Virus record (IMG/VR): IMGVR_UViG_3300036760_000522
Location: 237,551-301,550 of that record
Reading direction: 5' to 3' (one strand)
DNA: 64,000 nt
The notes under the pieces are model-generated. The model did no database searches and had not been told where the DNA came from. It saw nothing but the letters and a program-made list of their open reading frames with translations. Position 1 is the stretch's first letter. Each line of letters begins with the position of its first letter. Below, in pieces: positions 39,440 to 55,561 of this stretch. Both the position numbers and the translations under genes were made by a program.

Positions 39440-40040
39440 ACTCCCCATGCGGACAGTAGTGGCCCGTTTGTGGATTTAGGAACCCCCAATCGTCCTCAGA
39501 CCGATCTGCCACACGAGGACCTGTTCGACAAAGCGTCCAACAACCTGTCTGTAGCAACGTAACCCGGTGAAACGTGTCGTGGCGCCACCGATTGACGTGC
39601 CCCGGAAGGAGCTTGCGGCCGATGATTTTGCGGTCTGGCATCAAACGCTCTTCGATGTACCCGCCAGTCAGTATGATGCTCGAACCCCACACCCAGCCGT
39701 GGTTGTGAAGTTCAGGATCGGCGTCCCCGCGAAAGAAGTAGTGTAAGTAGTAGCTGGTGCCAGTCGTGGGAGGGTCTTTGCGTCGCAAGTAAACACGCAG
39801 CAGGTAAGGATCCCGGGCTTCGCCTACTAGGAGGCCTTGGAACTTGAAGTGGCTCGTGAGAACGAGCCGCCACAACATGTTGGTCAACTTGCTGCCCGAC
39901 CAACGATCTTGACGCGCGCGGCGTACCAAGACGTCCGAAACTTGTTCGAAGTCTAGACCGACCGACGAACTCAGGTCAGTGAACACTCCACGAATAACAC
40001 CGATCAGTGCGAGTCGTACCGGATCTTGAGGCTGTCCCAC
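39402..40040 (-). CDS. Cupin-like protein
   Basis: LHYF..D..LHNHGW..SIILTGGYIE..FHRV..WTL. Confidence 0.6.
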   Translation of the reverse strand: MGQPQDPVRLALIGVIRGVFTDLSSSVGLDFEQVSDVLVRRARQDRWSGSKLTNMLWRLVLTSHFKFQGLLVGEARDPYLLRVYLRRKDPPTTGTSYYLHYFFRGDADPELHNHGWVWGSSIILTGGYIEERLMPDRKIIGRKLLPGHVNRWRHDTFHRVTLLQTGCWTLCRTGPRVADRSEDDWGFLNPQTGHYCPHGEFRHVQAARSAQV

Positions 40041-40618
40041 AACCTCCGATAGCCTTGTATGTCCATCTTGGCGGCCTCAGCCAAGTTGGCCTTGAGCCAA
40101 TTGTAGAACGGGGCAACGTCTCGTCGGCCCGCAGGATAGTACGAAGTGTCCTGATTGAATTTGTTGCCTTTGGGTCCTGTGATTTCCTGTCGATGTCGGA
40201 CAGACCATTCGATCTGGGTTGCTCCGATGGCAAGTCCTGTACTGGTCTCGATTTGCACCGGCGTCGTGCCGCCTGGGTTGATGTCGACTCCTCGTTCGGT
40301 TGACTCGTGCAGATCGATTTCCCCTGGATGGTCGACGAGAATGTCTTGTATGAACCCCTTGATCTTGTCGTAGTCGGAGTGTTCCGGAAGTGCCTTGCTC
40401 ATGCCATCCATCCACTGGTCGCGGTCACCTGGGTAGCGGTTGGACGGGAGAAGAATCATCGTACGGACTTTCTTCCCACGCTTGCCAGCGTTGGTGAGCT
40501 CCCAAACTCGGAACTGATCCCGGTAGCGGTGGATTCGGACATTGCCGACCTCAGTTTGTTGGCCAAGTTGGAGGCCTGAAGCTTTGAACCTTCGGACTAC
40601 GTTGGACACAGCTGTCAT
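40004..40618 (-). CDS. Hypothetical protein with the shared N-terminal leader
   Basis: Starts MTAVSNVVRRFKAS. Confidence 0.65.
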   Translation of the reverse strand: MTAVSNVVRRFKASGLQLGQQTEVGNVRIHRYRDQFRVWELTNAGKRGKKVRTMILLPSNRYPGDRDQWMDGMSKALPEHSDYDKIKGFIQDILVDHPGEIDLHESTERGVDINPGGTTPVQIETSTGLAIGATQIEWSVRHRQEITGPKGNKFNQDTSYYPAGRRDVAPFYNWLKANLAEAAKMDIQGYRRLWDSLKIRYDSH

Positions 40619-40824
40619 GGCTCTTGATCCTCAGGATCCTCAGGATCCTCTGCGGTAGAGATCGGATTGACGGGTAATTGAAGGGCTTCGGCGCGAAGCA
40701 CAAGGTACGAACGAGGCGCAACGATTCCGATTTTTACGGAACTACGGTGAAGCTCCGTAATTTCCAAGACGATGTCGTCTCCGATCAGGATTTTCTGGCC
40801 CTTGCGCCTTGAGATAATCAACAT
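40615..40824 (-). CDS. csrA: CsrA/RsmA translational regulator
   Basis: MLIISRRKGQKILIGDDIVLEI..VKIGIVAP..VLRAE. Confidence 0.88.
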   Translation of the reverse strand: MLIISRRKGQKILIGDDIVLEITELHRSSVKIGIVAPRSYLVLRAEALQLPVNPISTAEDPEDPEDQEP

Positions 40825-40853
40825 ACATTCACCATCAGTGAAACAAAAGAGGA

Positions 40854-41276
40854 CTAGTTGACCTCGATCCAGTGCTCTCGGATCCCCTGAATAAGGTCCG
40901 GGCCTGACACACCATTGCTCATAGCGGCAACGAGCAACGCCACGAAGAATTTGAAGAGCGGATCCCTATCAAGTTCCGCCCTCTGTCCGTCAGGCAGCTT
41001 CGCAGCTATTGGATCAAGATTCGGCGACCCGTAGGCTTGTTTGAAGTCGTCATAACAGCGCTCGAGAAGCCGAGCCCCTTCGTCGGCTGAAAGAGGCTGC
41101 GCAGTCCAGACTTGAAGGGATTCAAGGATCCCTTCCGGCTCCAAGTTTGCCGCGATTGTCCAACACTCAATCATTGCCAAAGAGACCTTAGGCGCCACCT
41201 GCAAGATGTCCTGGCACACCCGTATGGGATTTTCACGGAACGACTTTTGAAAAGAGGCTGCGTCACGTAAGTCCAT
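40854..41276 (-). CDS. Hypothetical protein
   Basis: 140-aa ORF, ATG start. Confidence 0.5.
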   Translation of the reverse strand: MDLRDAASFQKSFRENPIRVCQDILQVAPKVSLAMIECWTIAANLEPEGILESLQVWTAQPLSADEGARLLERCYDDFKQAYGSPNLDPIAAKLPDGQRAELDRDPLFKFFVALLVAAMSNGVSGPDLIQGIREHWIEVN

Positions 41277-41688
41277 TGGCGTTCTCGACTTTCACTTGTG
41301 ATGGGACTTGTCCAGGGAACCAAAAACTGGGTGGCGACACGTCCCATTCGAGACGATCTGGTGTCTCGCCAACGACCTGAAAACCGAAACGCAAGAGACC
41401 CTCCGCGAAGCGCTTGGTCTGAACGTTCTCGACATAAATCCCCAGATTTGGGTAGCGCTGTTTCAGGTGCTCGAACAGAGTTGTGAAGGCACCACTGCCC
41501 GGCTTGGTTGCATTCAAGTTTGCGAGATCGATTGCGTCGTGCCACTCACCGCGGATGTACCTGCTTGAAACCCGCACGTAGAGCGCATCAAAGCCCGGAA
41601 AGTCGACGTACGCGTTTCTCGACAGGAGCCGTCCGTTGACTCTCCGGCCTTTGTGCCAGTAGAGGGAGAGGAACTTGTCGAGTTTCAC
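41263..41688 (-). CDS. GNAT-like protein
   Basis: IDLANL..PGSGAFT..VENV..F..L.RFGF resembles GNAT motifs A and B. Confidence 0.45.
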   Translation of the reverse strand: MKLDKFLSLYWHKGRRVNGRLLSRNAYVDFPGFDALYVRVSSRYIRGEWHDAIDLANLNATKPGSGAFTTLFEHLKQRYPNLGIYVENVQTKRFAEGLLRFGFQVVGETPDRLEWDVSPPSFWFPGQVPSQVKVENANGLT

Positions 41689-41897
41689 GACACTGTCTGA
41701 CTGCGGACAACTTCGGCTTCGTCCGCAGTAGCGTGCATACTTGGGACAACTTGACGGAAGTCGTCACAGATTGCAACAGGCCGGTAGTCGGAGGTGAATA
41801 CGTGCCCGTCGACCAATTTCGCCAAAGTCACGGCCTCTAGCAAAACGAGGCCGGTGCGCTCAAACTTGCCACTTTCCAACATCACTAGGTAGGTCAT
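41685..41897 (-). CDS. Hypothetical protein
   Basis: Start reassigned to ATG 41897, directly after promoter motif A. Confidence 0.5.
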   Translation of the reverse strand: MTYLVMLESGKFERTGLVLLEAVTLAKLVDGHVFTSDYRPVAICDDFRQVVPSMHATADEAEVVRSQTVS

Positions 41898-41903
41898 GTT
41901 GTT

Positions 41904-41933
41904 TACTACGAATCCAGAGGCCTCGGAATCGAG
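41904..41933 (-). promoter_or_regulatory. Bipartite phage promoter motif A, copy 2
   Basis: CTCGATT-CCG-AGGC-CTCTGG-ATTCGTAGTA, ending 6 nt before ATG 41897. Confidence 0.7.
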
Positions 41934-41979
41934 TACTTTCTTGACACATACGGGCGTCGATGCGAAATGGGTCAAACGC

Positions 41980-42453
41980 ATGGCTTACGATCCTCACAAA
42001 CGATCTGCCGAGTGTCCTGATTCAGACGCGACGACTGAAAAGGCGATAGAGGTGGAATTCGCGATCCCTACGTTGTTGACACAAGACCAACAACGTAGGC
42101 TTCTCGACCTCTTGGACGAGATCGTCCGGAGCCCCTGGAACCAACCCGAAGAAGGAGTTCATTGGGTCAGCGGCACAGGATCAAAACCCGTCTGGTCCCA
42201 GGCTGACGCAACTTTCCTTGGCAAACCCGCAAATCCCGATGCACCATTGTCAGGAGAGCCTGAATTTCAAGATGATGTGTTGCACGTTTGCACAACGGCA
42301 CGAGGCTTCATGAGCCCAAAAGAACGAGAACGCGAGTTTCGAAAACGCAAGTCAGTTCGTCTTTGTGTCGAGTGCAATGAACCACAATTTGAGACTCCCT
42401 CAGGCGTCACGTGCAAAAATGGCCACGGCGGTGTAGGTAGCGTTGAGAAATGA
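41980..42453 (+). CDS. Hypothetical protein with C-terminal zinc finger
   Basis: CVEC..CKNGH; start at MAYDP. Confidence 0.5.
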   Translation: MAYDPHKRSAECPDSDATTEKAIEVEFAIPTLLTQDQQRRLLDLLDEIVRSPWNQPEEGVHWVSGTGSKPVWSQADATFLGKPANPDAPLSGEPEFQDDVLHVCTTARGFMSPKEREREFRKRKSVRLCVECNEPQFETPSGVTCKNGHGGVGSVEK

Positions 42454-42719
42454 CGAGTCAAGAACAGCTAGCACTTTGGGTCGAAGGTACACCAGTTCAC
42501 CGCGGTAAAAAAGAGAACCCTGACAATGAATGCTGCCCAGACTTTTCGTGCTGCAAACCCGATCTGTTGCAACCCAAACCGGTCAGAGAGGCTTACGTCG
42601 CAGCCGACGAAGCGACTCGAATGAAGCTCCTAGGCACATTCCTGCAAGCAGCTCTTAGCGTCCTCGCACCCGACAAATCGGTCTACGTAGCCGCGGGCGA
42701 GCCAACTGAGCCCAACTGA
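42450..42719 (+). CDS. Hypothetical protein
   Basis: ATGA coupling; CCPDFSCC motif. Confidence 0.55.
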   Translation: MTSQEQLALWVEGTPVHRGKKENPDNECCPDFSCCKPDLLQPKPVREAYVAADEATRMKLLGTFLQAALSVLAPDKSVYVAAGEPTEPN

Positions 42720-42734
42720 GGAGAGGTGAACGAC

Positions 42735-42998
42735 ATGAACCCCCAACTTGGTCAGAACCTCACTCTGACGGTTTCGGTATTCGTTTTAGGGTTAGCTATC
42801 TGCACCATCTTTGTAGTCGTCACCAAAGACCGCAAGCACAGAGCTCTCATGCGTCGCATGGAGCTATACCGAGAGTGGATAGAGACCGTGCCGACTATGG
42901 CCGAACCCGAACGCACACAAGGGCGGCAGCACATTGAACGGATCTTGACTTCAGGTCGCGATGACGATTTTCGAGGTCCTTGGGAAAACCGAGCATGA
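42735..42998 (+). CDS. Small membrane protein
   Basis: RBS GGAGAGG; one transmembrane helix. Confidence 0.55.
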   Translation: MNPQLGQNLTLTVSVFVLGLAICTIFVVVTKDRKHRALMRRMELYREWIETVPTMAEPERTQGRQHIERILTSGRDDDFRGPWENRA

Positions 42999-43008
42999 TA
43001 CCCCCTCT

Positions 43009-43479
43009 TCAGGCATTTCCGCCAGGCTGAGTTCCTCGAAGCGGTTGGGCTGGGAAAACCGTTTGAAAGATCTCGACAGCCTCCGTCGAGAGCGGCATGA
43101 TCGGTATGGCAAATCCACGATCAAGAAGAGTTGATATTAGCCTGAGAAATGTTTCTGGACTTCTTCCCAAAGTAGCCTGACTCAATAGTTTGGTCAGATC
43201 GCGGTCGCTTGCTTGAGTCTGGGTGGTTGTGACAAAATCCGCCCACTCTTTGAGCAGGACTTCTTCGACAGCTCCAGGCACGTATGCAACTGTGATGTTG
43301 AACTCTTTGTCTTGGGTCTTGAGCTGAAATACGAGACAGTCAGGTCCGGCGTTTACGACGTAGCGAAGCCCGACGAACATGTCCTCAGGCTCGAATCCAA
43401 GCCGCCGGAACAGCTGGTGGACCCCCCAAAGCTCGCGGAGGTACGGTTTTCGATAGAGCTTTGACTTGGCGTGTTTCAT
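43009..43479 (-). CDS. Hypothetical protein
   Basis: 156-aa ORF within a minus-strand run. Confidence 0.5.
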   Translation of the reverse strand: MKHAKSKLYRKPYLRELWGVHQLFRRLGFEPEDMFVGLRYVVNAGPDCLVFQLKTQDKEFNITVAYVPGAVEEVLLKEWADFVTTTQTQASDRDLTKLLSQATLGRSPETFLRLISTLLDRGFAIPIMPLSTEAVEIFQTVFPAQPLRGTQPGGNA

Positions 43480-43487
43480 GTCCGCTG

Positions 43488-43703
43488 TTAAAGGACACCA
43501 GGCTTAAGGAGGCTTGCCGAGAAACTGTGCACAGATTGGATCCGTGCTCTTATTTCTGGGCTGTGATCTAGTACGCTCGCGAGAGCTTCCGCGATGGCAC
43601 GTGGCCGTGTCTCAGGAGGCAGCCCAGCGCTAAAAGCGATAGTCCGATAGAGCCCTTTCAACGCTTCTATCTCTGAGACGAGTTGCGCTTCACGCTTGTT
43701 CAT
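43488..43703 (-). CDS. Hypothetical protein
   Basis: 71-aa ORF within a minus-strand run. Confidence 0.45.
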   Translation of the reverse strand: MNKREAQLVSEIEALKGLYRTIAFSAGLPPETRPRAIAEALASVLDHSPEIRARIQSVHSFSASLLKPGVL

Positions 43704-43953
43704 CGGCTTCCAGTCCGAGAACGCAATTCAGGTACGGAGGAACTTTGGAATCAGCCCAACGCGTCTTCAATTCCTGCACCGTCAAACGACCGTCGTAGTA
43801 AGCCTTGACGTCATCCTTCGGACCGGTGGCGTGCATCAACTTGTAGTTGTGGCCGTCGACAATGATGTGGATCCAAATCCTCGCCATACCGTGACCAGGC
43901 TGACCAGACAGCTGGTATTCCTCGTACTCCGTCGCGTGTGTTTCAATGTTCAT
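43690..43953 (-). CDS. Hypothetical protein
   Basis: RBS GAAGGAAGGG. Confidence 0.5.
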   Translation of the reverse strand: MNIETHATEYEEYQLSGQPGHGMARIWIHIIVDGHNYKLMHATGPKDDVKAYYDGRLTVQELKTRWADSKVPPYLNCVLGLEADEQA

Positions 43954-43971
43954 GATCTGCCCTTCCTTCAG

Positions 43972-44445
43972 TCACAAAGCCTCAGCGATTTCACGGAGCT
44001 TGTCGGCCTTGTCCTTCGGGCTGCGTTTTTCACATACTTGCCAATACAAGATGGATCCGTTGCACAAACGCTCCGCTGTTTGACGGACTTGTGATGGAAC
44101 GCGACCAGCTCCGAACACGTGCTCTAGTATACCCCACAACGTGCGCTGCAACACTACGGCTGTTTCGTTGAGCTGTTGTATTGAGACACTTTCCCCATTT
44201 TCGATTAGTCTCTCGACTGCATTCACCGCCTTCAAAATCTTCTTGCGATAATTCGGATTGTAAGGAATTGTGCGGACAGCCTGCGCTAGACGCTCCACTT
44301 CCTCTTGTGTGACGTCCTCCGGCAGCTTGAACGAAATGCGGAGATCTGGTCTTAGCCAGAACTTGTGTAGGATCTCGCCAGTGCCGGGTTTGACGGCGTC
44401 TGCAACCGGTTCTGTGGACACGACTTTCAATTCTTCCTCTGACAT
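43972..44445 (-). CDS. Hypothetical protein
   Basis: RBS GGAGGTG. Confidence 0.55.
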   Translation of the reverse strand: MSEEELKVVSTEPVADAVKPGTGEILHKFWLRPDLRISFKLPEDVTQEEVERLAQAVRTIPYNPNYRKKILKAVNAVERLIENGESVSIQQLNETAVVLQRTLWGILEHVFGAGRVPSQVRQTAERLCNGSILYWQVCEKRSPKDKADKLREIAEAL

Positions 44446-44745
44446 TTACGACACCTCCAGAAGCTCACCCAGAAAACTGTTCAGCCTTCCGGGGTTCGTG
44501 TAACCACGTGCCATACGGACCGTTCCGTAGGCGTACCAGTGAGCGCGAGGATCTAAGTCCTCCGCTTTTGCGCGAGCTGCCGGGACGGCGTCTAATGCAC
44601 GTTGATGTTTTTTGAAAGGACCAAGAAGCAGCCCCGTCCGCGTCCCGTCAACGACGCTCACGTAATAAGGGCCCGGCCTGGCGTCGGCCTTTTGGACGCG
44701 CCCTGTCGTCGGCGGATGTGTGTAACACAAGATCCGTTTCGACAT
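44446..44745 (-). CDS. Hypothetical protein
   Basis: Start reassigned to MSKRIL at 44745 (AGGAAG upstream). Confidence 0.5.
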   Translation of the reverse strand: MSKRILCYTHPPTTGRVQKADARPGPYYVSVVDGTRTGLLLGPFKKHQRALDAVPAARAKAEDLDPRAHWYAYGTVRMARGYTNPGRLNSFLGELLEVS

Positions 44746-45182
44746 CACTTCCTGCCTCTGACTACGAGTTTGTAAATCTCGACACATTTCGGACCGACGT
44801 GACGACTCGCTAGATGGTGGGCGGTGATTCGTGTCTCGAGATCCCAACCGCCAACCGCATTGGGCTTTTTCGATCCATTGGGTTGCACATGACCGCAAAG
44901 ACTTGAAGTATCGATTCCGCCGCTGAACTTCAACCCGATTTTCGGGCTCACCTGACGAATGTGCCAACGACTGGATGAGCTCGCTAAAGAACCCTCACAG
45001 AAGGAGTATTCGGGAGTTTTGGGCTTGAATAGGGAAACCATGCCCCTATTCTACGTTTCCTGCGGACCAGCAATTGAATCTGTTTTGACACTGTGCCCCG
45101 AATTGACAAAAAACGTGCCGCTTGTTAGCGTGGTTGTCTACTGGGAACTGAAGGGCTGGAGCGCGAGGCAAGGACAAAGCCG

Positions 45183-45536
45183 GTGACCAAGATTTGCGAG
45201 ATCGACCAAACCGAGTGGGAGGCGTGGGTAGCTGGGCGCCCGCCAGAAGTGAGAAATCTCTGTCGGACATTTCCTCCTGACCGTCTTTATCGGATGAAGT
45301 CCGGTCACCGGGTGACGATTTGTAGTTATTCAGAAAACGGGACAATGATGGTGGATGTGCGGGGTGAATACAACAAAATCACATTCGAGCGAACTGTCTT
45401 TGGCGTGAAGCCAGAGGACCTCGAAGAGTGTGAGCTTCCTGGAGAAGGGGAAGAACTCGGCGCAATGCTCACAGAGCCAAAAGAAATCGAAAACCTCCTT
45501 GACGGGATGCGTGAACACATGAAAGATCAACAATGA
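45183..45536 (+). CDS. Hypothetical protein
   Basis: GTGA/ATGA coupling with its neighbours. Confidence 0.55.
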   Translation: MTKICEIDQTEWEAWVAGRPPEVRNLCRTFPPDRLYRMKSGHRVTICSYSENGTMMVDVRGEYNKITFERTVFGVKPEDLEECELPGEGEELGAMLTEPKEIENLLDGMREHMKDQQ

Positions 45537-45832
45537 GTGTGGACGTTGTAGTAATGAATCGAGAAACCGCCGCAGTCGTCAATCTGGATATTGGTCGCCT
45601 AGACTCTGCACAGATTCGTCACGTTGACGGGCGCGGCTACGTCAACGTGACAGGTCTCGGTGTTGAGGGAAGAGTTGGTCTTTTGAAGTACTTAGATGGA
45701 CATGACTGGACGGTTCGGATGGAAACGACGCACGTACCAGATTTGTATCTGCGTGACGTGTCCGCGGACCCGCCACAACCTTCTGTGTTTTGGTTGCTGG
45801 AACGCCAAACAGCACGGAATCGCTTGCTCTAG
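45533..45832 (+). CDS. Hypothetical protein; C-terminus lies in a duplicated segment
   Basis: ATGA coupling. Confidence 0.5.
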   Translation: MSVDVVVMNRETAAVVNLDIGRLDSAQIRHVDGRGYVNVTGLGVEGRVGLLKYLDGHDWTVRMETTHVPDLYLRDVSADPPQPSVFWLLERQTARNRLL

Positions 45833-45924
45833 TATTTGTTCTCGCGACCAACCTCACGCGGGAACAGCTTCGTAACTTGAAGCGGACCCGCCACAACCTT
45901 CTGTGTTTTGGTTGCTGGAACGCC
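45764..45924 (+). repeat. Perfect 43-bp direct repeat flanking 75 bp
   Basis: GCGGACCCGCCACAACCTTCTGTGTTTTGGTTGCTGGAACGCC at 45764-45806 and 45882-45924. Confidence 0.9.
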
Positions 45925-45982
45925 GGCTTGGAGGGCCATCAGGCAGCAGATTTGACAATCCGTGAATCGGGATAACACTTAG

Positions 45983-47839
45983 TTGATGTTATTTAAGTAC
46001 CCGTCTCTGGTTTCAGTTGTCCTGCTCCTAGCCTGTAGCGATCACCAAGATTCGGTTGGACCTGTTGGCCGTGTCACACAGGCTGTAAGTTACGTTTCTG
46101 ATTCACTAAATTGCGGTGCCAGCGGCTACCAATGTAAAGGCGGTCGCACCTGTCAGACTGGCCATTGTACCCCGGTTTGGATCCCCATGTCGACCGTCGG
46201 CGCACCCGCGCCTCGGTTTGCCGCAGCTGCAACAGCCTACGAAGGGAAGTACCTGGTTGCAGGTGGCTGCACGAGTTACGACCTAAATGCGCCGGCAGAA
46301 ATTACGGCGTCAATTTACGATCCCGCGACTGATACGTGGTCTGAATTTCCGTCGTTCGACATTGAAGACAGGCGTAATCTGTCCGTGTTGTTTACGGTTC
46401 CGGACGGACTGTATTCTCTCGGCGGTGAAACACAATGCCGGCATGCCGGCATCTCCTCCTATCATACACTGGTGAAGTACGACCCGATTGGTTTGAAATG
46501 GGACCGACTCCCGTACGAAGAAGACACCATCAACGCAGGCTACAACAAGTCGATTACTGTCATTCCAGGGACCAATGAGATTTTTATCTATGGTGGTGGA
46601 GGAGGCAATGGTCCGGCCTGGTGGTATGCAGATCGCGGAAGTTTCCCTCTTCTCGAAGACACATGGCTGAGCTGGACACATCCCGGTTGCCCACTTTCCG
46701 GATGCATACGCGGAGGGGCTTTTACGACCTTCTACGACGCAGGCTTCATCCGTGTCATGGGAGGAGATCCTACCTACGGAACAGCGCCCGCAGGTTTGTC
46801 ATTCGAACTTGCAACCAGCACTTGGTCAAACTGGACGGTACCAGCCGGGACCCCGGACTTCCAAAACGACTTTTCAAACTACTCCAACACAGCTCCGACG
46901 GGTGTCGACACCGGCACGCGACTCATGTACGTCTCGGAGACGGGGAACGTCGCCATTTACGATCGCGCCTTAGGCACGTGGTCGACGGATGTTACCGCGC
47001 CGCCTAGCGGCTTCTGTGCGGGCGGATCAGCCGCTTACGTGGACGGTGAACTCGTCGTGTACTCCGGAAGCTGTGACGGCGTTCTAGCGTCCGTTGGTGC
47101 GCGCTATCAGGCGCCAGCTCCGGGATTGGCGTTCACACCAACGGTGTCAGTTACAAGCACAAGTACGACATTCACTGTCGGAGAGGTGACCCGACTCGTC
47201 ACCTTCAATGATCCATTTGGGATCGATGAGACTGAAGTCACGGCTGCGCAATACCAGGAATGTGTCACGGCTTCTTCTTGCACGGCTGCTGCGACCGGTG
47301 GCGCATGCACAAGCGGAGTCTCGGGTCTTGAACAACACCCAATCAACTGTGTCACTTACGCACAGTCCGGGGCTTACTGCTCTTGGGCCGGTAAGCGACT
47401 GCCGACCCAGCAAGAGTGGGAATACGCCGCTAGGCACAACGACCCGACCACCCACAAGTACCCTTGGGGCAACAGCACGGCGGATTACAACACGAAGTGC
47501 AACTTCTCCGTCACAACCGACGGCTACGTCGCCACAGCCCCAGTAGGCAGCTTCCCTGCTGGAAACAGCGCCCTTGGCCTCCAAGACATGGCGGGCAACG
47601 TCTGGGAGTGGACCTCGAGCCCAGCCTGCTTCAACGAAACCGGGGATTGTACGAATTGCCCGGCCGGTGGTTGTGCAAGTGCTTGCGACGTTTGCGGCAG
47701 CCCAGATCGTGTCTTCAAAGGCGGAGGTTTCACACACGCGCTTGCCTACACGCGTTCGGCATTTCGCTCTTACAACGACCCAAGCTACTCGACAGACATC
47801 CTCGGTTTTCGTTGCGCCAAGAACACCGTTGTTCCCTAG
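45983..47839 (+). CDS. Lipoprotein with Cys-rich repeat, Kelch-like propeller and FGE-sulfatase (CLec-fold) domain
   Basis: Lipobox VLLLAC; SDSLNCG..C..G..C..G.C; Kelch-like LVAGG..IYDPATDTW; HPINCVTY..AYCSWAGKRLPTQQEWEYAAR, YPWG, DMAGNVWEW, GFRCA. Confidence 0.88.
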   Translation: MMLFKYPSLVSVVLLLACSDHQDSVGPVGRVTQAVSYVSDSLNCGASGYQCKGGRTCQTGHCTPVWIPMSTVGAPAPRFAAAATAYEGKYLVAGGCTSYDLNAPAEITASIYDPATDTWSEFPSFDIEDRRNLSVLFTVPDGLYSLGGETQCRHAGISSYHTLVKYDPIGLKWDRLPYEEDTINAGYNKSITVIPGTNEIFIYGGGGGNGPAWWYADRGSFPLLEDTWLSWTHPGCPLSGCIRGGAFTTFYDAGFIRVMGGDPTYGTAPAGLSFELATSTWSNWTVPAGTPDFQNDFSNYSNTAPTGVDTGTRLMYVSETGNVAIYDRALGTWSTDVTAPPSGFCAGGSAAYVDGELVVYSGSCDGVLASVGARYQAPAPGLAFTPTVSVTSTSTTFTVGEVTRLVTFNDPFGIDETEVTAAQYQECVTASSCTAAATGGACTSGVSGLEQHPINCVTYAQSGAYCSWAGKRLPTQQEWEYAARHNDPTTHKYPWGNSTADYNTKCNFSVTTDGYVATAPVGSFPAGNSALGLQDMAGNVWEWTSSPACFNETGDCTNCPAGGCASACDVCGSPDRVFKGGGFTHALAYTRSAFRSYNDPSYSTDILGFRCAKNTVVP

Positions 47840-47853
47840 TGACAGGAACTGTC

Positions 47854-48406: not shown

Positions 48407-48435
48407 GACGTCGCGGATACGAGGCCCCCTGATCC

Positions 48436-48996
48436 TTACGGCTTCGAAGTGGACTTCCCTTTCAAGTTCTGTACGCGTGTGATTTCCTCAGCCGTATGTG
48501 GCGTCCCGCCTGCGTTGATCCCCAGGTACAGATCGAGTACTTCGTCGCGAGTCTCCAAGGAACAAACGCGCCATTTGAAAGTGTGAGACAACGTGCGAAG
48601 CTTACCTGTGAATTCCTTGTAACGATGACCAAAGACCCTGAGGTCGTTTCGCAAGAATTTACGTACTGCTTCGAGTCGTTGCTTGCCGTCAACAATGGTA
48701 TACGGTCCTCGGTAATCCCGGCCCCAACCAGGGCAGTTGAAGGTGAGATTCCTTCCGACTTCGCCGCCTCGTAAGGCGTACTCGACGTAGGCGACTTGTT
48801 GCGCTTCCGTCCAAACATGCGCACGCTGGAAGTCCGGCTCAAGATCAAGAGGGGCCACCCTCTCTTCAGTCTGGTGCTGGATGTGTTCCTCGAGGTAAGT
48901 CCAAAAGACGTCGATTTCGTAATGCGCGTGCGGAAATTGGGGGATGTCGTTGAAGTCCATTCCCTTTTCACTTGCGGCTTGCGGCTTGTTGGTCAT
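48436..48996 (-). CDS. Stand-alone DUF262 (ParB/Srx-like) domain protein
   Basis: PDFQRAHVW, IVDGKQRL, YLGINAGGTP. Confidence 0.8.
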   Translation of the reverse strand: MTNKPQAASEKGMDFNDIPQFPHAHYEIDVFWTYLEEHIQHQTEERVAPLDLEPDFQRAHVWTEAQQVAYVEYALRGGEVGRNLTFNCPGWGRDYRGPYTIVDGKQRLEAVRKFLRNDLRVFGHRYKEFTGKLRTLSHTFKWRVCSLETRDEVLDLYLGINAGGTPHTAEEITRVQNLKGKSTSKP

Positions 48997-49004
48997 TTGC
49001 AGCC

Positions 49005-49034
49005 TACTACGAATCCGGGTGCCTAAAAATCGAG
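49005..49034 (-). promoter_or_regulatory. Bipartite phage promoter motif A, copy 3
   Basis: CTCGATT-TTT-AGGC-ACCCGG-ATTCGTAGTA, ending 8 nt before ATG 48996. Confidence 0.7.
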
Positions 49035-49074
49035 GGTTGTTTCGGGACTGCGACAGATTGCTCTTTTCTGGTTT

Positions 49075-49105
49075 CCTTCAATTCCCAATATACTACAACA
49101 CCACA
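49075..49105 (-). promoter_or_regulatory. Inverted exact copy of the 31-bp element at 31734
   Basis: Reverse complement reads TGTGGTGTTGTAGTATATTGGGAATTGAAGG. Confidence 0.65.
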
Positions 49106-49118
49106 CCACATCACAAAA

Positions 49119-49478
49119 ATGTCCACCGCTCACCCAGTTCGCTCGTGCACAGTATGCATGCTTCGTGGTAAGAATACACTAGCGAAATACGTTGCATCTG
49201 GAGAGGGCCTGAGACCCCTGCAATGGTACGAATGTGAAGACCACGGGGAAGGTGATCACGAGGAAGCTGGTGGGGGGCGTCGAGCCTCTCGTGAACCGAT
49301 TGAAGCTTGGTTCGATCGTGTGTTGCCTAAAGAAACAAGCGTAGAAGAATTGATCGACAAGTCCTCGTTGGGGGATCCCGAAGCCAAACGAATCCGGTCC
49401 ACTGCAAACCCGGATCTCGTCAACAAAGTTTTGAAACGGACTGACGAGATCTCATCACGAGGAAGCAACAAATCATGA
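49119..49478 (+). CDS. Zinc-finger hypothetical protein
   Basis: CTVC..CEDH; start at ATG 49119. Confidence 0.45.
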   Translation: MSTAHPVRSCTVCMLRGKNTLAKYVASGEGLRPLQWYECEDHGEGDHEEAGGGRRASREPIEAWFDRVLPKETSVEELIDKSSLGDPEAKRIRSTANPDLVNKVLKRTDEISSRGSNKS

Positions 49479-49777
49479 ACCGGCGGAACTTCTTCCTAGC
49501 AGCCTCGGGTCTCTTCTTGTCAGTTGAGACGGACATTCATCGCGCTTACTCGTTCCTCCGGCCGCCTGAAAGACCGCGACACGTCGGCGCCTTTTGGGTG
49601 ACTTCGAAAGACGGCCTTGAGCTAGAAGTCGGGATAGACGAGGCTGTTAAAACGAGATTTTGGAAAGGTGACCGGACCGGCGTGATCATTGTAAAGTACG
49701 TTCGGGAAGATCCTTCAGATCTTGCGTGCCGGGCTGAACGCTCCCGACTGGTTGCGTGGGAGATTGTTAACGGGTAG
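49475..49777 (+). CDS. Hypothetical protein with Tat-like N-terminus
   Basis: MNRRNFFLAASGL; ATGA coupling. Confidence 0.5.
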   Translation: MNRRNFFLAASGLFLSVETDIHRAYSFLRPPERPRHVGAFWVTSKDGLELEVGIDEAVKTRFWKGDRTGVIIVKYVREDPSDLACRAERSRLVAWEIVNG

Positions 49778-49788
49778 TTGGTACTGAG

Positions 49789-50511
49789 ATGAAATTGCGT
49801 CCTACTATAATTGCAATTATTGCAACAACGGTTGTTGCAATACCATTCGGTTTTCTTGGCGTCTTCGTCCGACGACAGAGCACAGAACTGGAAGCACTCC
49901 GTACCGAGACCCAAACACTCCAACGCACACTTGCGGCACAAGCTGTGCCTCAAGCTACAATATCTAAACAAGCTGCGCTCCCCCCGGCGGACATCCTAGG
50001 CGTCAAGCTTGGAATGGAAGTCACAGAAGCCATAGCGACTTTGAGACGTCAAGGCTTTCTAATCACAGGTGACACGACAACCCGTGTCGTAGCCCACGTC
50101 TATCCTGACGACGACGACTGGCCTCTGAAGGATTCCGTTGTCTCGGATCTGGTTGTGGATTTGAACACGAACCTGCGAGTTGTTTCCAAGATCTTCTTTC
50201 ACAAATCATACAAGTCGCTCGTACCGCTCGAAGAGTTCCAAGCTGCTATGACTAAGCAGTACGGTAAACCGACGTGGGAAGGTGCCGGTACCTACGCTAT
50301 CGGGGGCTTCCTTAACCTGAAGTGGCTTTACCCGTCCGACGGATCTGACTGCTTAAAAGGAACGGCTTGGCCGTCAACTGAATGGCCGCCCTCTCTCCCC
50401 GAGACTTGTGCATTTGCACTGACGGTCAACGCCTCGGTGGACACAGGGACTAAGTCCCACAACAAATTCGTGACCAGTTTTGCGTTGCGGCTCGGTGACC
50501 CCAAGGGTTAG
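49789..50511 (+). CDS. Membrane-anchored protein
   Basis: N-terminal transmembrane helix, short coiled coil, then a globular domain. Confidence 0.6.
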   Translation: MKLRPTIIAIIATTVVAIPFGFLGVFVRRQSTELEALRTETQTLQRTLAAQAVPQATISKQAALPPADILGVKLGMEVTEAIATLRRQGFLITGDTTTRVVAHVYPDDDDWPLKDSVVSDLVVDLNTNLRVVSKIFFHKSYKSLVPLEEFQAAMTKQYGKPTWEGAGTYAIGGFLNLKWLYPSDGSDCLKGTAWPSTEWPPSLPETCAFALTVNASVDTGTKSHNKFVTSFALRLGDPKG

Positions 50512-50526
50512 ACTAGGAAGCCCACG

Positions 50527-51186
50527 ATGGCATTCGTCGCACACAGTGTTGTCGGTCTAGGACCTGACGACGTCCCATACCTCCGCTGCCCTAATACCCA
50601 CAGGCCGGTTGCGGCGGAATGTGATCATGAAAACTACTGGCGTTGCACTGGCTGCGGTCATGGAGTGGACATACTCCTCGAAAAGTACGGACCACTCGCG
50701 CTCAAGAAGGGGCAAAAACCTGTTACGGACGCGTTGGGACACTACGTGATTGGTCTCACAGGGGGAACTTCACCTCGTCTGTCTCTCCATTGTCATAAAG
50801 CTTCAACGAAAAGAACGCTTGTCTACTATAGGGGCGAGGGCGTGTATATCTGTGGCTGTTGCAACGCGGATGTGACGGCCCTCCGCTCCGAGTACAAACA
50901 GCGAATTGAAGAGACCCAACAACCGTTGAAAGAGGAGGCCAAAATGGAGGAGTCCAACGTAGAAGCTGAGCCACAAGATCCGTACGTGGTGCATCGCAAG
51001 AAGCCAGAGACTGTAACTAAGGAGCAAGAAGGATCCGCAGTTGTGGCTCTCGGAAAAAACGATCCCATACAATGTCCCCAATGCGGCGTTAAGGCGTCTC
51101 GCTTGGCCTACGAACCTACGGTCAGTGGCTTTGTCTCACGGCTGCTCTGCCCCTATTGCGGGAAGCCTATCGAGGAACACCAGTGA
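50527..51186 (+). CDS. Multi-zinc-ribbon protein
   Basis: Several Cys clusters (CTGC, CGCC, CPQC, CPYC). Confidence 0.55.
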   Translation: MAFVAHSVVGLGPDDVPYLRCPNTHRPVAAECDHENYWRCTGCGHGVDILLEKYGPLALKKGQKPVTDALGHYVIGLTGGTSPRLSLHCHKASTKRTLVYYRGEGVYICGCCNADVTALRSEYKQRIEETQQPLKEEAKMEESNVEAEPQDPYVVHRKKPETVTKEQEGSAVVALGKNDPIQCPQCGVKASRLAYEPTVSGFVSRLLCPYCGKPIEEHQ

Positions 51187-51890
51187 TGACGTCCATGAAG
51201 ATCACAGTACACGTCGACGACTTTGGACAACTTGTCGTTGCGGCTCAACGTGTTGTTGATGCCGTTAGAGACTTCCAAAAGCTCGTTGGCTGCAAAGAAG
51301 CTCAAGGCTTTGAGCTGGCCTACCGTATGGTAGGGACGGCAGCACCACGTGTTGTGAGTGTTAAGAAATCGAAACCGCCTAAACAAGTTAAACCAACAAA
51401 AATCACATTGCACGATCGCATGGTCGAGGCGCTGCAACGAAATGAAAATGCTCAAACAGCGCGGGAAATCATGCAAGAGGTCCTTAAGACCGGGCCTGTG
51501 TCCGCGACCAATCCGAAAAACTACATCAGCTTCCTGCTCTCGAAACGAGAAGACCTCTTCGAGAAGATCTCACACGGAAAATATCGACTGGTACCGAAAC
51601 TGGCGAACGGGTCCAACCCAAAACCTCCACGAAGCGTCCAACCAGTACCGGAACTGAGCCAATCAAAGGTGTTCGAAGGTAAACCAGCCCTCCTACAAGC
51701 GATGGCAGAGGCGCTCAGCGTGAGATCTCTTCGTTATCCCAGCGAACTCATAAAGCAGCTTCAGGCCTCGAAGACACACAGTCTCCGACCGATTGATGAG
51801 GAACAGATCAAAGCACTACTCAAAGATCCAAGTCTCTTCACCCGGGACAAAAACAAGCGATGGCATCCCTTCGCTCGAACAGGCAAGTAG
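51183..51890 (+). CDS. Protein with two winged-helix (HARE-HTH-like) domains
   Basis: TLHDRMVEAL..TAREIMQEV..YISFLLS..LFEKISHGKYRL and a second similar unit. Confidence 0.55.
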   Translation: MMTSMKITVHVDDFGQLVVAAQRVVDAVRDFQKLVGCKEAQGFELAYRMVGTAAPRVVSVKKSKPPKQVKPTKITLHDRMVEALQRNENAQTAREIMQEVLKTGPVSATNPKNYISFLLSKREDLFEKISHGKYRLVPKLANGSNPKPPRSVQPVPELSQSKVFEGKPALLQAMAEALSVRSLRYPSELIKQLQASKTHSLRPIDEEQIKALLKDPSLFTRDKNKRWHPFARTGK

Positions 51891-52142
51891 CTGTGGCCTT
51901 GTGACACACCACATGACTTACGAAGCATGCGTCGGTGTTGCGAAGCTCCAAAGCGTGCTCATCTACCGTCACCACGATGGCCTAGATTCTGCCCGAAAGT
52001 TTTCAGGCGATCGGTCCCGCGGCACTGGCGGCTGGAACTACCAACACGGGAGCACGCATTTCGAGGAACCTGAGAGGTGGCGGATCCCCACGACGGTCAG
52101 CGATTTGGAGCTTTGCCAAAAGAGCCCCGGGTGTGAGATGTC

Positions 52143-52595
52143 ATGAGTGACCTGAAGCGTCGAGAGCTGTTCGAGAGAAAAGAAACGATACTGAAACTCC
52201 TCCTCGACGAGGTACTTCAAGGTCTCAAACTTTTAGGGTTAACGTCGGAAGCCCCGTACAAGCTTGTAGGCTTCATCGCTGATCTTGCCGACAATGATCA
52301 GGGGGCGAAATTCGGAAAAGCTTTGATGGAGAAAATGATCCACTACGATCCTGTCCAGGGAACGGAACATTGTACGACCATGAGGGATTCTCGAGAGCCG
52401 AGCCTTTTGCGAGGATACGTCTACGGCTCATATGACAGCGTCATCAGGCCTTTCTCGCCTGGGATAGCAGATCAGCTAGGTAGTAGAAAACAAGGGGAAC
52501 TGCCTGTTGTTGTGTTTGCTGGGGACGGTGCTTCTTTGTTTTCCCTCAGACACGACGCTGTCAAGTACGTGCCGGTCGTCGAGCTCATTCCCTAA
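52143..52595 (+). CDS. Hypothetical protein
   Basis: 150-aa ORF in a plus-strand run. Confidence 0.5.
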   Translation: MSDLKRRELFERKETILKLLLDEVLQGLKLLGLTSEAPYKLVGFIADLADNDQGAKFGKALMEKMIHYDPVQGTEHCTTMRDSREPSLLRGYVYGSYDSVIRPFSPGIADQLGSRKQGELPVVVFAGDGASLFSLRHDAVKYVPVVELIP

Positions 52596-52624
52596 GCCCA
52601 CAGAACCCGCGGAAAGCAAGTCCT

Positions 52625-53275
52625 GTGACGAGTGGCCAGCTGAGAGCAAGAGTCGTTGAGCTGGCTATCATGCACAGCAAGACGAGTATCGAGCCTGTTA
52701 CTGCGGTGATTTGGATCCGAAAGAGGGACACGACCCAAATCTCGTTGGTCGAGATTTGCCCCACAGCACGCTCAGGTCCCTACTCCGCTCAGTTCCATGC
52801 GGGAATTTATTTCGACTTTCCGCTATCCATCTACATTGGTTCCCGTAGTCAGCTTGAACGCTATAGAGTCCTTGATCCAAAATTGGTGCCAGACATTATC
52901 GAAGGGGACATCGTTCTCGATCAATACGGAGAGGCCAGAAAGTTGATCGGCGACCTTCTCACGCCGCTTGTCGAGACAGAGCACGACAAATTAGCGAGAG
53001 AGCTTGGTGGTGTGAAGAGGGACCAGGCATGGTTCTGGGTACGCCAGCTTAGTGCCGATGAGATGAAACGCCTTTACGAAGCCCTGTGCAGAGATTTGGG
53101 ACGCGCCCCCCTACCTGTTCACGGGTTCATACAAGTTGGATCTGCGGACTTGGACACGAAGCTCCAAGCTCTGGTCACAGAGTGGTGGGACGAATGTGAG
53201 GAGACTTCTCGCGATTCGCTTGTACGACTCGCACGGAAAGCTTACCAGCTTGGGTGCATCGAAAAGGAAGGTTGA
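52625..53275 (+). CDS. Hypothetical protein
   Basis: 216-aa ORF in a plus-strand run. Confidence 0.5.
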   Translation: MTSGQLRARVVELAIMHSKTSIEPVTAVIWIRKRDTTQISLVEICPTARSGPYSAQFHAGIYFDFPLSIYIGSRSQLERYRVLDPKLVPDIIEGDIVLDQYGEARKLIGDLLTPLVETEHDKLARELGGVKRDQAWFWVRQLSADEMKRLYEALCRDLGRAPLPVHGFIQVGSADLDTKLQALVTEWWDECEETSRDSLVRLARKAYQLGCIEKEG

Positions 53276-53548
53276 GTGGAAATTCGAATGCCGACACCTG
53301 AAGAGGCCGCCAAGGAGGTGTCAGATATTTGCACACGGCCATGGCCGCCCAACAATCTGTTGTGCGTTAAGACCGTCCCAGCCCGGTCCTTCGTTCTCAG
53401 TGGGAATGAGCCTTGGCCGAAGGAAATTCGTTTCGGGCACATCCGTCGCATGGGCAACACGATCTTGCCAACGGTCTATACCGACCAAGGCGGTGTCTGC
53501 TATGAATCTCTCGAGGCGATGGTCCAAGCTGGTTGGTACGTGGACTGA
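53276..53548 (+). CDS. Hypothetical protein
   Basis: GTG immediately after the upstream stop; RBS GGAAGG. Confidence 0.5.
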   Translation: MEIRMPTPEEAAKEVSDICTRPWPPNNLLCVKTVPARSFVLSGNEPWPKEIRFGHIRRMGNTILPTVYTDQGGVCYESLEAMVQAGWYVD

Positions 53549-53738
53549 CAGAAGGAAATACATGTCGCGTAATATCCCTATCTGTCTGTACTTGTTGATC
53601 ACAACAAGTTGTGCGGCAGCCTCCAAATCATGCACTGAAAGTGACGACGCAAGCAAAGATTCCCAGGCGTTGGGGGCCATCCAGGTGAGGCGCTCTGCGT
53701 CGTTGAAGTGACGATGCGAAAACTTCCAAAGGAAGAGC

Positions 53739-54182
53739 ATGAGCAAAGCAATTCCAGTCAAAGTCGCTAGAGGTATTGCGATCGAGTCAGATCTGACTCA
53801 CGTTGTCGTGATCGGATTCGACGAACGCGAGAACATGTTTCAAGCCGCAACCTTTGGTTTGCGCGATAAGCGCGACAAAGAGAACGCCGCTGCCATGGGC
53901 GACTACCTCATGAGCATAGTGGGCGCAGACCTCGCGCAAGGAAAATCATTTGAGGACTTCAGACCAAGCAGCCCTATCGGCAAGGAGGAGCTGATTCACA
54001 AACTCGCGCAAGCAGTGATGAGCCATCCGTATCGCCATTTGGTTTATGAGGGTTTACGAAAAGAGTACCAAGACGCCCAACTTCAAGCGACTCTGGAGCT
54101 GAAGCTAAGAACCGCGTACGAGGCCGGCTACGCCGGTGGTGTCGCACAAGTAGCGGCCGACGTTGTGGCCGCAGGTCCCTGA
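53739..54182 (+). CDS. Hypothetical protein
   Basis: RBS AAGGAAG. Confidence 0.55.
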   Translation: MSKAIPVKVARGIAIESDLTHVVVIGFDERENMFQAATFGLRDKRDKENAAAMGDYLMSIVGADLAQGKSFEDFRPSSPIGKEELIHKLAQAVMSHPYRHLVYEGLRKEYQDAQLQATLELKLRTAYEAGYAGGVAQVAADVVAAGP

Positions 54183-54190
54183 AAGATCCT

Positions 54191-54616
54191 ATGGCTATCC
54201 TCGACGGCAAGCCTGTAGACGACGACGTGATTGATCCTGCGAAGCACAGGTTCATTGGACTATTCCGGTATCCACGACCCCCGACAAGTTCGGGCTACAT
54301 CGTATGCTCTTGTGGAACCACCCTCCAATACTTACAGGAAGGTCACGAGCACTGGCAAAGAGGTCACTTCGACTCACCGCAGTACGAGACTAGGTCGATG
54401 AAAATCGAGACACGTCACAAGGAAGCTCCGACGTGTCTACACGACAACGAGCCACTCCGCTACATCGGCTACTTGTGGAGCTGTCAAGACGAGCCAGCTC
54501 ACGAGCTTTACACGTGTGCTCAGTGTCAGCGCAACTACCAGTTCCTGGTTCCACAACCAGTCGTTACACAACCAAATACCTCTCCGGATCCTTTGATGCC
54601 CGTCCGTGAGTTGTGA
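54191..54616 (+). CDS. Zinc-binding hypothetical protein
   Basis: CSC..H..H, CLHD and CAQC motifs. Confidence 0.55.
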   Translation: MAILDGKPVDDDVIDPAKHRFIGLFRYPRPPTSSGYIVCSCGTTLQYLQEGHEHWQRGHFDSPQYETRSMKIETRHKEAPTCLHDNEPLRYIGYLWSCQDEPAHELYTCAQCQRNYQFLVPQPVVTQPNTSPDPLMPVREL

Positions 54617-54789
54617 CCTCTGTTGCCAACGTTGTCGCCAGATACAAGTTGGCCAATACTAAGAAGTGGCCTGACGGCCGACTTCGCGCAAAACTCGGTG
54701 ACAAAGTTTACCAAATGGCACCTGGACCATTTGGCACAGCATCCACGGTCAACGGGGTTGTCTTTTTGTCCCGAGGTCAGGTCTCGTGA
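54613..54789 (+). CDS. 58-aa protein with the shared N-terminal leader (below the ORF-track cutoff)
   Basis: GTG overlaps the upstream TGA. Hand translation: MTSVANVVARYKLANTKKWPDGRLRAKLGDKVYQMAPGPFGTASTVNGVVFLSRGQVS. Confidence 0.6.
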   Translation: MTSVANVVARYKLANTKKWPDGRLRAKLGDKVYQMAPGPFGTASTVNGVVFLSRGQVS

Positions 54790-54808
54790 CTAACTGGTGG
54801 GTTAAGGG

Positions 54809-55168
54809 TTGATGTCCTCCGCAGCCAACGTTGTTCGTCGATACACGACTCGCAAGATCGCTACCAAGCTTCGTCTAGGACCGGGCCGCAAGGACGAGAG
54901 AGCGTCGGAGTCCCTTGCCAAGATTCGACTCAAATCACGAAATCGTGGTGACCTCGAATCCGCGATCATCTCTGCTGGCTACCACGCCAAGAAGCTCAAG
55001 CAAACGATGTACGTCTACCAAGGGAATTCGTACATGCACACAATTTGGCAAGTCTCGGAGAGACCTGGACACTACTTGAACCCTGTCAACAACACGGGAG
55101 AGCAAGTTGTGTCTGTCACTACTGACCTTACAGTCACATTCTACGACGTGGTTCGGACTGACGAGTAA
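54809..55168 (+). CDS. Hypothetical protein with the shared N-terminal leader
   Basis: Starts (M)MSSAANVVRRYTTR. Confidence 0.65.
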   Translation: MMSSAANVVRRYTTRKIATKLRLGPGRKDERASESLAKIRLKSRNRGDLESAIISAGYHAKKLKQTMYVYQGNSYMHTIWQVSERPGHYLNPVNNTGEQVVSVTTDLTVTFYDVVRTDE

Positions 55169-55177
55169 TCAGCGCTT

Positions 55178-55561
55178 TCAAATACACACGAGTTGATCGA
55201 TTACTTCCTTGGCGTCGATCTCACCACGCCAATGACGCAAAAGAACGTTTCGATTTCGGTTGATGAACTTGACAACCTGTCTTTTGACGTTGCCAGGTAA
55301 CGTACCCAAGACTTGAGGCGGACTCGTCAGCCGTACTGACACTGCATCCTTCAACCCCTCGGTTGTGATCTTCTCCCCAAGTACAACTTTGATTCTGGGA
55401 CCGTGTTGGGCGTCTGCTCCTGCAAACTCTCCCGCAGAGATCCAAATAACGGCGCCTACGACACCTGTGGTCGAAGGTCGAAGGTTGGACATTGCTTCGA
55501 CGCAAAATCCTGCTGCCTTCTGTTTCTGAAAGTGCGCAGCTACTCGTTTGGCGGAGGTCAC
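55178..55561 (-). CDS. Hypothetical protein with the shared N-terminal leader
   Basis: Starts MTSAKRVAAHFQKQKAA; the core contains SNLRP..TG..IWI..HGPRIKV. Confidence 0.6.
   Translation of the reverse strand: MTSAKRVAAHFQKQKAAGFCVEAMSNLRPSTTGVVGAVIWISAGEFAGADAQHGPRIKVVLGEKITTEGLKDAVSVRLTSPPQVLGTLPGNVKRQVVKFINRNRNVLLRHWRGEIDAKEVIDQLVCI

Follow-up and report, generated by a model that had tools for sequence, protein, structure and literature searches.

A short N-terminal helix motif shared by unrelated proteins in a clade of huge phages

Why should proteins that appear to have nothing else in common begin with nearly the same eleven residues? The question is raised by a 64,000-nucleotide stretch of viral DNA (the window), which makes up the end of one 301,550-bp contig of the IMG/VR collection (record IMGVR_UViG_3300036760_000522, positions 237,551 to 301,550; the whole contig is referred to as genome G000). 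A preliminary description of the window had noticed four open reading frames (ORFs), here genes 1 to 4, with a common N-terminal leader of the pattern M-[TS]-[SA]-[VA]-x-[NR]-V-[VA]-x-[RH]-[YF], and had proposed a portable amphipathic tag for capsid targeting or export. The N-termini and positions of all four ORFs were verified. By scoring the motif across G000 and its relatives—assisted by structure models and a co-folding experiment—we find that the leader is non-random and, as modelled, forms a self-contained helix that a whole clade of huge phages employs as an autonomous motif. There is good support for reading it as a docking or address tag, and the leading hypothesis for its destination, to which we give a probability of roughly 0.35, is capsid loading via the prohead scaffold.

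G000 is an uncultivated huge phage, because the contig carries direct terminal repeats and encodes a head module, a tail/baseplate block and DNA-metabolism genes. The head module (genome 212-226 kb) contains a terminase, a portal, a head-maturation protease, a Q-rich acidic scaffold-like protein and the major head protein; the large DNA-metabolism block includes UvsX, a RecD-like helicase, thymidylate synthase, ligase, ribonucleotide reductase and GroEL. Relatives in IMG/VR were obtained by a capsid-protein search (capsid proteins 64-100% identical), and three of them, G001 (241 kb), G002 (323 kb) and G003 (159 kb, the nearest), were taken in full; together with G000 and LR745208.1 (485 kb), the sole relative of G000 in the GenBank phage collection, they make up the five-genome set used below. 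A scan of IMG/VR with gene 4 recovered no relative. A 68-kb contig of a near relative (L066) served for codon-level comparison of genes 2 and 3.

The leader and its carriers

The strict pattern matches only the four original proteins in a six-frame scan of the 301,550-bp genome. Because that count is circular, a position-specific scoring matrix (PSSM) was built externally, on the 53 distinct leaders that gene-4 homologues of other contigs supplied, with G000 left out. At 12 bits or more the matrix finds 13 matches among the ORFs of G000, as against 0.8-1.35 in shuffled proteins, and 8 of the 13 lie within the first 26 residues of the longest ORF (binomial p = 1.5e-5), so that the genome-wide enrichment at N-termini, proposed at the outset as a check on the motif, is borne out by an independent matrix. 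G003, G001, G002 and LR745208.1 yield 8, 5, 8 and 11 matches, respectively, where 0.4-1.0 are expected; pooled over the five genomes there are 45 matches against about 3.4 expected, 28 of them in the first 28 residues. The consensus of these 45 reads M-T-[L/S]-[A/T]-x-[R/N/K]-[V/I]-[V/A]-x-R-[Y/F]-[L/K]-x-A, and among the N-terminal matches listed the start codon stands three to seven codons (in one case 12) ahead of the core. Further copies lie between domains and close to C-termini; in G000 the excess at C-termini is not significant (p = 0.29).

The set is not confined to four members, because at least nine more carriers are found elsewhere in G000; at least 12 proteins of that genome carry the motif N-terminally (Table 1). 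A resemblance to RVAQVF near the N-terminus of an extracytoplasmic function (ECF) sigma factor, which the preliminary description had also pointed out, does not hold: this stretch scores below zero, lies upstream of the likely start (MDPPPNV) in an extension that is probably untranslated, and is rejected as a fifth member.

The proteins behind the motif are indeed unrelated, for it precedes a DUF4160 fold, a topoisomerase IB, a GNAT domain, a 2H phosphoesterase and a module that is also part of a polyvalent protein, and it is conserved while the attached domains range from about 30% to 90% identity, in at least ten unrelated families. Several carriers have more than one copy or an unusually placed one: the topoisomerase IB-GNAT protein of G000 has copies at residues 7, 274 and 453, a 410-aa (amino-acid) protein has the motif at both ends, and a 2H/LigT/Acb1-like phosphoesterase has a copy 14 residues before its C-terminus. 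In LR745208.1 the architectures include HAD_SAK_1-[motif]-topoisomerase IB and [motif]-2H-[motif]-x-[motif]-x. In many further carriers no domain could be recognised; Pfam searches of ten tagged proteins from relatives recognised topoisomerase IB as the sole family, and Pfam and PHROGs searches of the four original leader proteins found no match. Three paralogues of about 140 aa bear the leader variants IDRILDAYKK (genome start 835), ERVAQRFQRE (25784) and IDRILDRFKD (153637), and the latter two gave no match to Pfam or PHROG profiles. The attached 2H and GNAT domains and the module of gene 2 belong to the domain repertoire of polyvalent proteins, among whose domains 2H, InPase and GNAT have been described (PMC5512222).

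It is the peptide, rather than the DNA, that these genes share. As the preliminary description had held, the leaders differ at the DNA level: the four genes have unrelated upstream DNA and differ in their codons, 11 identical bases (GCCAACGTTGT) being common to genes 2 and 3. The single homologue found for gene 3, 90% identical and located on L066, differs from it within the leader by three synonymous and no non-synonymous changes, and the first 15 codons of gene 2 show no change against L066. A signal in the RNA or DNA, instead of a peptide, is ruled out by the unrelated upstream DNA together with the synonymous codon differences, and the comparison supports a portable tag selected at the protein level.

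Two further sequence elements were observed near leaders. The hexamer GTGCTA is rare in G000 (40 copies vs about 147 expected), yet five genes with a leader have it no more than about 25 nt ahead of them, frequently as TGCTAnnnT; the genes so preceded are mostly without a Shine-Dalgarno sequence. As a clade-wide regulatory signal the hexamer was rejected, since it accompanies one leader gene in G003 and none in G001, G002 or LR745208.1. A second, unrelated N-terminal leader, of 27 residues (M(T)TLRSKLIRLAHENPALRPxLLPLLKEA), occurs on at least ten proteins of LR745208.1 (loci L036-L045) and is absent from G000-G003; it was recovered by a fixed-offset comparison of N-terminal 12-mers that was too rigid to recover the RVVARY-type motif. 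The gene-1 homologue of LR745208.1, a 588-aa ORF (431502-433268), has this different leader directly upstream of the homologous domain, about where the RVVARY motif sits in other gene-1 homologues.

The helix and its possible receptor

In AlphaFold2 (AF2) models the leader stands apart from the domain that follows it. Residues 1-12 of gene 1 have a predicted local distance difference test (pLDDT) score below 50 and helix 5-13 is not docked on the domain; in gene 4 a helix at residues 3-15 (pLDDT about 50-60) is followed by a floppy linker and does not pack on the domain. On the modelled helix a conserved stripe is formed by M1, residue 4, V7/V8 and Y/F11, beside two conserved basic residues. 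The hydrophobic moment is moderate (0.27-0.53), mean hydrophobicity is low (about -0.37 to 0.14), and net charge is +2 to +4, with K/R-rich stretches (KSKKK, QKQK) often following the leader. Residue choice is restricted, V being used rather than L or F and an R before the aromatic being near-invariant, a pattern more in keeping with a specific protein pocket than with binding to membranes or nucleic acids. An export signal, one of the two roles first suggested, is unlikely: the leader lacks the hydrophobic core of a Sec signal, and its two arginines lie four residues apart instead of forming the twin of a Tat signal. What stands of the original proposal is a portable tag, which sits on unrelated folds, has been gained and lost within domain families and recurs at N-termini in five genomes; the sigma-factor resemblance and the export signal fall away.

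We hypothesize that the leader serves for docking, as a portable helix some 11-15 residues long with, as a rule, a basic or floppy linker behind it, which this clade of huge phages attaches N-terminally to stand-alone accessory or effector modules and sometimes inserts between the modules of fused proteins. The hydrophobic stripe and the two basic residues would bind one common phage-encoded receptor, for which the best candidate is the helical segment conserved at the N-terminus of the prohead scaffold-like protein, whose gene neighbours that of the major capsid protein. In this way the prohead would take up the tagged enzymes, which would be delivered along with the DNA, in what would be a non-covalent counterpart of polyvalent-protein fusion and of the capsid-targeting sequence of phage T4.

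The scaffold-like protein is conserved in G001, G002, G003 and LR745208.1 solely in its residues 1-136; beyond these the protein continues in tandem 'QQDDADKDKSKQAQDQQQ' repeats and a long Q-rich stretch for which the relatives show no conservation. A co-fold of the capsid protein (with a 7-row alignment), the scaffold-like protein and a tagged 96-aa protein (genome 122649-122936), that is, of one tagged partner and one receptor pair, gave a median interface score (ipSAE) of 0.38, with all three controls at 0.00; the tool grades this result as 'weak support', at a mark that is reached by 58 of 80 solved complexes and by 2 of 110 mismatched pairs. Residues 2-13, the leader, make confident contacts with scaffold residues 87-138, in the segment conserved in all four relatives, and the score is lost when the scaffold is replaced, no confident contacts with the capsid protein chain being reported in the co-fold. 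Two tagged genes flank the head module (208408-209058 and 226393-226761, the latter keeping its leader in three relatives), and others lie inside the tail/baseplate block (73.8-77 kb). For phage polyvalent proteins, and for some solo versions of their domains too, deployment through the capsid has been proposed (PMC5512222). Together these observations make a consistent but weak and indirect case for capsid targeting.

A number of observations weigh against capsid loading. The co-fold counts as weak on the calibration of the tool, in which just 7 of the 80 solved complexes passed at 0.60 or below; shallow alignments or none went into it, and its contacts run beyond the leader along much of the remaining helical partner. 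Most tagged genes are situated in accessory islands outside the late structural block, and Acb1-like phosphodiesterase and similar enzymes could act in the cytoplasm, unpackaged. Copies between domains and near C-termini are unexpected for a cleavable N-terminal signal, and no conserved cleavage motif was found after the leader, no residue being fixed at a set distance from the aromatic; an 'E-A' 2-12 residues after the leader in several carriers is, in gene 4, part of a folded strand (residues 24-27). Motif counts vary (13, 8, 5 and 8) among phages whose capsid proteins are 64-80% identical, and a search of the GenBank phage collection found no cultured relative.

The alternative that survives best, possible in our judgment though we would not wager on it, is that the helix docks its carriers to a common partner other than the capsid, gathering RNA-repair or anti-defence enzymes on a hub such as a phage chaperone (GroEL is encoded), an AAA+ ATPase, the ribosome or RNA machinery, or a cytoplasmic multi-enzyme complex; it would then resemble clamp-binding motifs or the tail motifs of single-stranded DNA-binding protein (SSB). 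Like linear docking motifs, it is found at N-termini, between domains and near C-termini; it flanks 'Swiss army knife' domains of the RNA-repair type (HAD_SAK_1, 2H and topoisomerase IB); its restricted residues (V, then V/A, then R and Y/F) fit a specific pocket; gene 1 is probably coupled to a CsrA gene; and accessory regions hold most of the tagged genes. Yet the scaffold-like protein is the sole tested partner that gave any signal, and one version of this explanation, mimicry of ribosomal protein bS21 (ALRRFKR vs VVRRFK), failed: the Ribosomal_S21 profile (PF01165) finds nothing in the genome at E values up to 10.

It is doubtful that the carriers share no function at all, the helix having been inherited or recombined and spread by duplication and exon-like shuffling as a cap, a solubiliser or a relic of gene fusion and fission. 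Such a history would agree with the widely differing leader counts of related phages, with the adjacency of genes 2 and 3 and their 11 identical bases, with the paralogy of several carriers (that at 455 with gene 4; those at 835, 25784 and 153637 with one another), and with the methionine that precedes internal copies in 23 of 26 long gene-1 homologues, as expected if once-separate genes had been fused. It fits poorly with conservation of the motif over some 30-90% domain identity and at least ten unrelated families, with leader changes that are synonymous only, and with models in which the leader is not packed on its domain.

Improbable, too, is a general nucleic-acid- or membrane-binding helix that would anchor enzymes on the inner membrane or on nucleic acid, be it RNA or DNA and possibly the packaged genome: the charge of +2 to +4, the K/R-rich stretches that follow, the hydrophobic moment and the many cargos that act on nucleic acids speak for it, but a V/A face with a single aromatic and low hydrophobicity would make a weak membrane anchor, and position-specific conservation (V, not L, I or F; a near-invariant R) argues for a defined protein pocket. 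Least probable is a stability or turnover tag, a degron or adaptor peptide read by an AAA+ protease of host or phage (ClpXP, for instance) so as to time the lifetime of its carriers, for although the terminal position, the basic-hydrophobic make-up, the exposure on a floppy linker and a loose likeness to N-terminal ClpX signals (lambda O) and to the 'LRVVK' tail of SspB count in its favour, inter-domain copies are hard to reconcile with it, the motif is far more specific than known ClpX N-motifs, and no tie to a protease gene was seen.

If the leader is a cargo-loading or docking signal, it provides a sequence rule that predicts co-injected or co-assembled effectors among the unknown genes of huge phages, would explain a varied set of delivered proteins without giant fusion proteins, and supplies a small natural tag, some 12 residues long, with which foreign proteins could be loaded into large capsids. 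Capsid loading can be extended, tentatively and at longer odds, to a peptide-coded, scaffold-read system in which huge phages would sort dozens of effectors with interchangeable address helices, R-V-V-A-R-Y being the type of G000 and the 27-residue leader an additional type in LR745208.1; were this true, address helices would replace polyvalent covalent fusion and the injected protein set could be reshuffled gene by gene. Whatever the destination, specificity on at least ten unrelated families points to a hub protein.

The tagged genes and their neighbours

Gene 1 has 47 homologues, mostly from huge-phage contigs, and the motif stands ahead of the domain in most of them. In many the motif is inter-domain because an extra KOW-like domain is fused upstream of it, and this small beta domain occupies the position that corresponds to CsrA in the window. 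The CsrA-family gene lies directly upstream of gene 1, its stop codon overlapping the gene 1 start (ATGA), an arrangement from which gene 1 is probably translationally coupled to it. Before the internal motif copies a methionine is kept four to eight residues ahead of the core in 23 of the 26 long gene-1 homologues (P0097-P0132), as in ...EKQAMTPTRRVVARYL, a further locus being G002 230269-232554; this methionine could be an internal translation start, a trace of the fusion of once-separate genes or a residue of the binding face. Fold searches with the gene 1 model gave no significant match in PDB and no convincing one in the AlphaFold Database (AFDB), and look-ups of genes 1 and 3 in the ESM Atlas gave no usable lead.

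Gene 4 could be placed by its fold: a Foldseek search of AFDB returns DUF4160 proteins that match over residues 22-127 (E = 4e-6, template modelling score 0.66-0.84), the DUF4160 Pfam profile does not match the gene, and a PDB fold search gave no significant match. The gene adjoining the LR745208.1 homologue has a weak match to PF13711. A recognisable leader is present in about 61 of 94 gene-4 homologues, a few being without one, and the linker from leader to the conserved 'EAMSNL' strand measures 0-10 residues in this family. A paralogue 63% identical to gene 4 lies at the opposite end of the genome (455-832); in L066 gene 4 is absent and a gene with a CxxCxxCC domain comes directly after gene 3. 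Public gene calls start gene 1 at an internal Met54 (P0096) and gene 4 at an internal Met24 (P0001), cutting off both leaders; the upstream starts are supported because the leader is conserved in homologues, and the gene starts are corrected here.

Gene 2, which stops about 20 bp ahead of gene 3, is the truncated 5' part of a 199-aa gene: its L066 counterpart (9402-10001) has that length, and the two sequences diverge after codon 55. Six other proteins contain the gene 2 module (aa 16-56) without the leader. One such protein, of 4,882 aa (P0146), has InPase, LPD1 and ART-PolyVal domains and is therefore polyvalent as Iyer et al. 2017 (PMC5512222) use the term.

Other genes of the window and of L066 were recorded in passing. 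A GroEL-like chaperonin (window 20578-22194, minus strand; phrog_5725, E = 1e-125) lies within the DNA-metabolism block. A 618-aa ORF (window 45983-47839, plus strand) combines a hydrophobic N-terminus with a C-terminal FGE-sulfatase-like region (GNVWEW), an unusual phage cargo, and its L066 homologue matches PF03781. L066 also has a Tad2-like gene (16025-16516, plus strand; PF11195, a precomputed call), which suggests a possible anti-Thoeris counter-defence in that accessory region.

Table 1. Positions of the leaders, tagged genes and associated features
Feature	Reference	Position	Strand	Details
Leader of gene 1, MTAVSNVVRRF (MTAVSNVVRRFKAS)	window	40586..40618	-	PSSM 12.5 bits
Leader of gene 2, MTSVANVVARY (MTSVANVVARYKLA)	window	54613..54645	+	GTG start; PSSM 20.1 bits
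Leader of gene 3, MSSAANVVRRY (MSSAANVVRRYTTR)	window	54812..54844	+	PSSM 11.5 bits
Leader of gene 4, MTSAKRVAAHF (MTSAKRVAAHFQKQ)	window	55529..55561	-	GTG start; PSSM 20.7 bits, register SAKRVAAHFQK
Gene 1	window	40004..40618	-	204 aa; leader + alpha/beta domain of unknown function; AF2 mean pLDDT 91.6
Gene 2	window	54613..54789	+	58 aa; leader + small module; GTG start; truncated remnant
Gene 3	window	54812..55168	+	118 aa; function unknown; no Pfam or PHROG match
Gene 4	window	55178..55561	-	127 aa; leader + linker + DUF4160-fold domain (residues 22-127); AF2 pLDDT 85.5
CsrA-family gene	window	40615..40824	-	PF02599, E = 8.6e-17; acidic C-terminal tail (EDPEDPEDQEP)
RVAQVF of sigma factor (non-member)	window	25942..25959	-	PSSM -1.6 bits; residue 25 of longest ORF
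Further N-terminal carriers (starts)	G000	455, 25784, 73806, 75555, 122640, 130010, 208408		
Weaker N-terminal carriers (starts)	G000	153637, 226393, 835		
Three paralogues of ~140 aa	G000	835-1275, 25784-26203, 153637-154077	-, +, -	...LVVDENVQ...IRVI.P...
Scaffold-like protein	G000	213902-215071	-	conserved N-terminal 136 residues
Capsid protein	G000	212290-213174		
Protease	G000	215148-216566		
GTGCTA sites	G000	438-443, 25762-25767, 75547-75552, 122640-122645, and ahead of ORF 835-1275(-)		
Second-leader examples	LR745208.1	14562-15269, 20283-20732, 398171-398575, 433231-433653	-, -, -, +	27-residue leader

Comparison with known address peptides

Literature searches on jumbo and huge phages returned no description of such a motif, which does not prove that none exists. 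Several known systems mark diverse proteins with short peptides in a similar way. The encapsulation peptides of bacterial microcompartments are N- or C-terminal amphipathic helices of about 18 residues, joined by poorly conserved linkers to diverse enzymes; the huge-phage motif is far more sequence-specific and more basic than these, and no microcompartment shell genes were seen among the annotated genes. The prohead protease of phage HK97 has a C-terminal capsid-targeting tail. Encapsulin targeting peptides, as summarised in PMC10960027, are short, terminal and portable, and dock cargo through a flexible linker in a shell of HK97 fold. Unlike the huge-phage leader, the peptides of encapsulin cargo and of HK97 are usually C-terminal, have other motifs and bind the shell protein itself, whereas the weak co-fold signal of the leader was with the scaffold-like protein; with its different motif and no confident contacts to the capsid chain in the co-fold, the leader is not an encapsulin targeting peptide.

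Phage T4 has N-terminal capsid-targeting sequences (CTS) of 10-20 residues (PMC5694885); in a passage of that source citing Mullaney and Black 1996, the CTS is portable and sufficient for targeting. In both cases a short N-terminal peptide is common to unrelated proteins of one phage (IPI-III, Alt and gp24 in T4), and T4 cargo includes host-modifying enzymes. The two differ in that the huge-phage leader has no sequence similarity to the CTS and no conserved cleavage motif of the L/I-x-E type was found behind it, and in that the motif also occurs between domains and near C-termini, and is distributed clade-wide in variable copy number. The T4-type protease profile PF03420 reaches 13.6 bits, below threshold, inside a 1,082-aa ORF, and the head module encodes a different head-maturation protease (phrog_18299).

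With the polyvalent proteins (Iyer, Burroughs, Anand, de Souza, Aravind 2017; PMC5512222) the tagged proteins have in common the 2H and GNAT domains, a module shared with an InPase-LPD1-ART-PolyVal protein and the proposed logic of effectors delivered at infection. A polyvalent protein is, however, one giant polypeptide, whereas the huge-phage modules are mostly separate small proteins, each bearing a short tag that is not among the Pfam-recognised domains. Set beside the T4 CTS and the encapsulin and microcompartment peptides, the leader is a known kind of signal in a new version.

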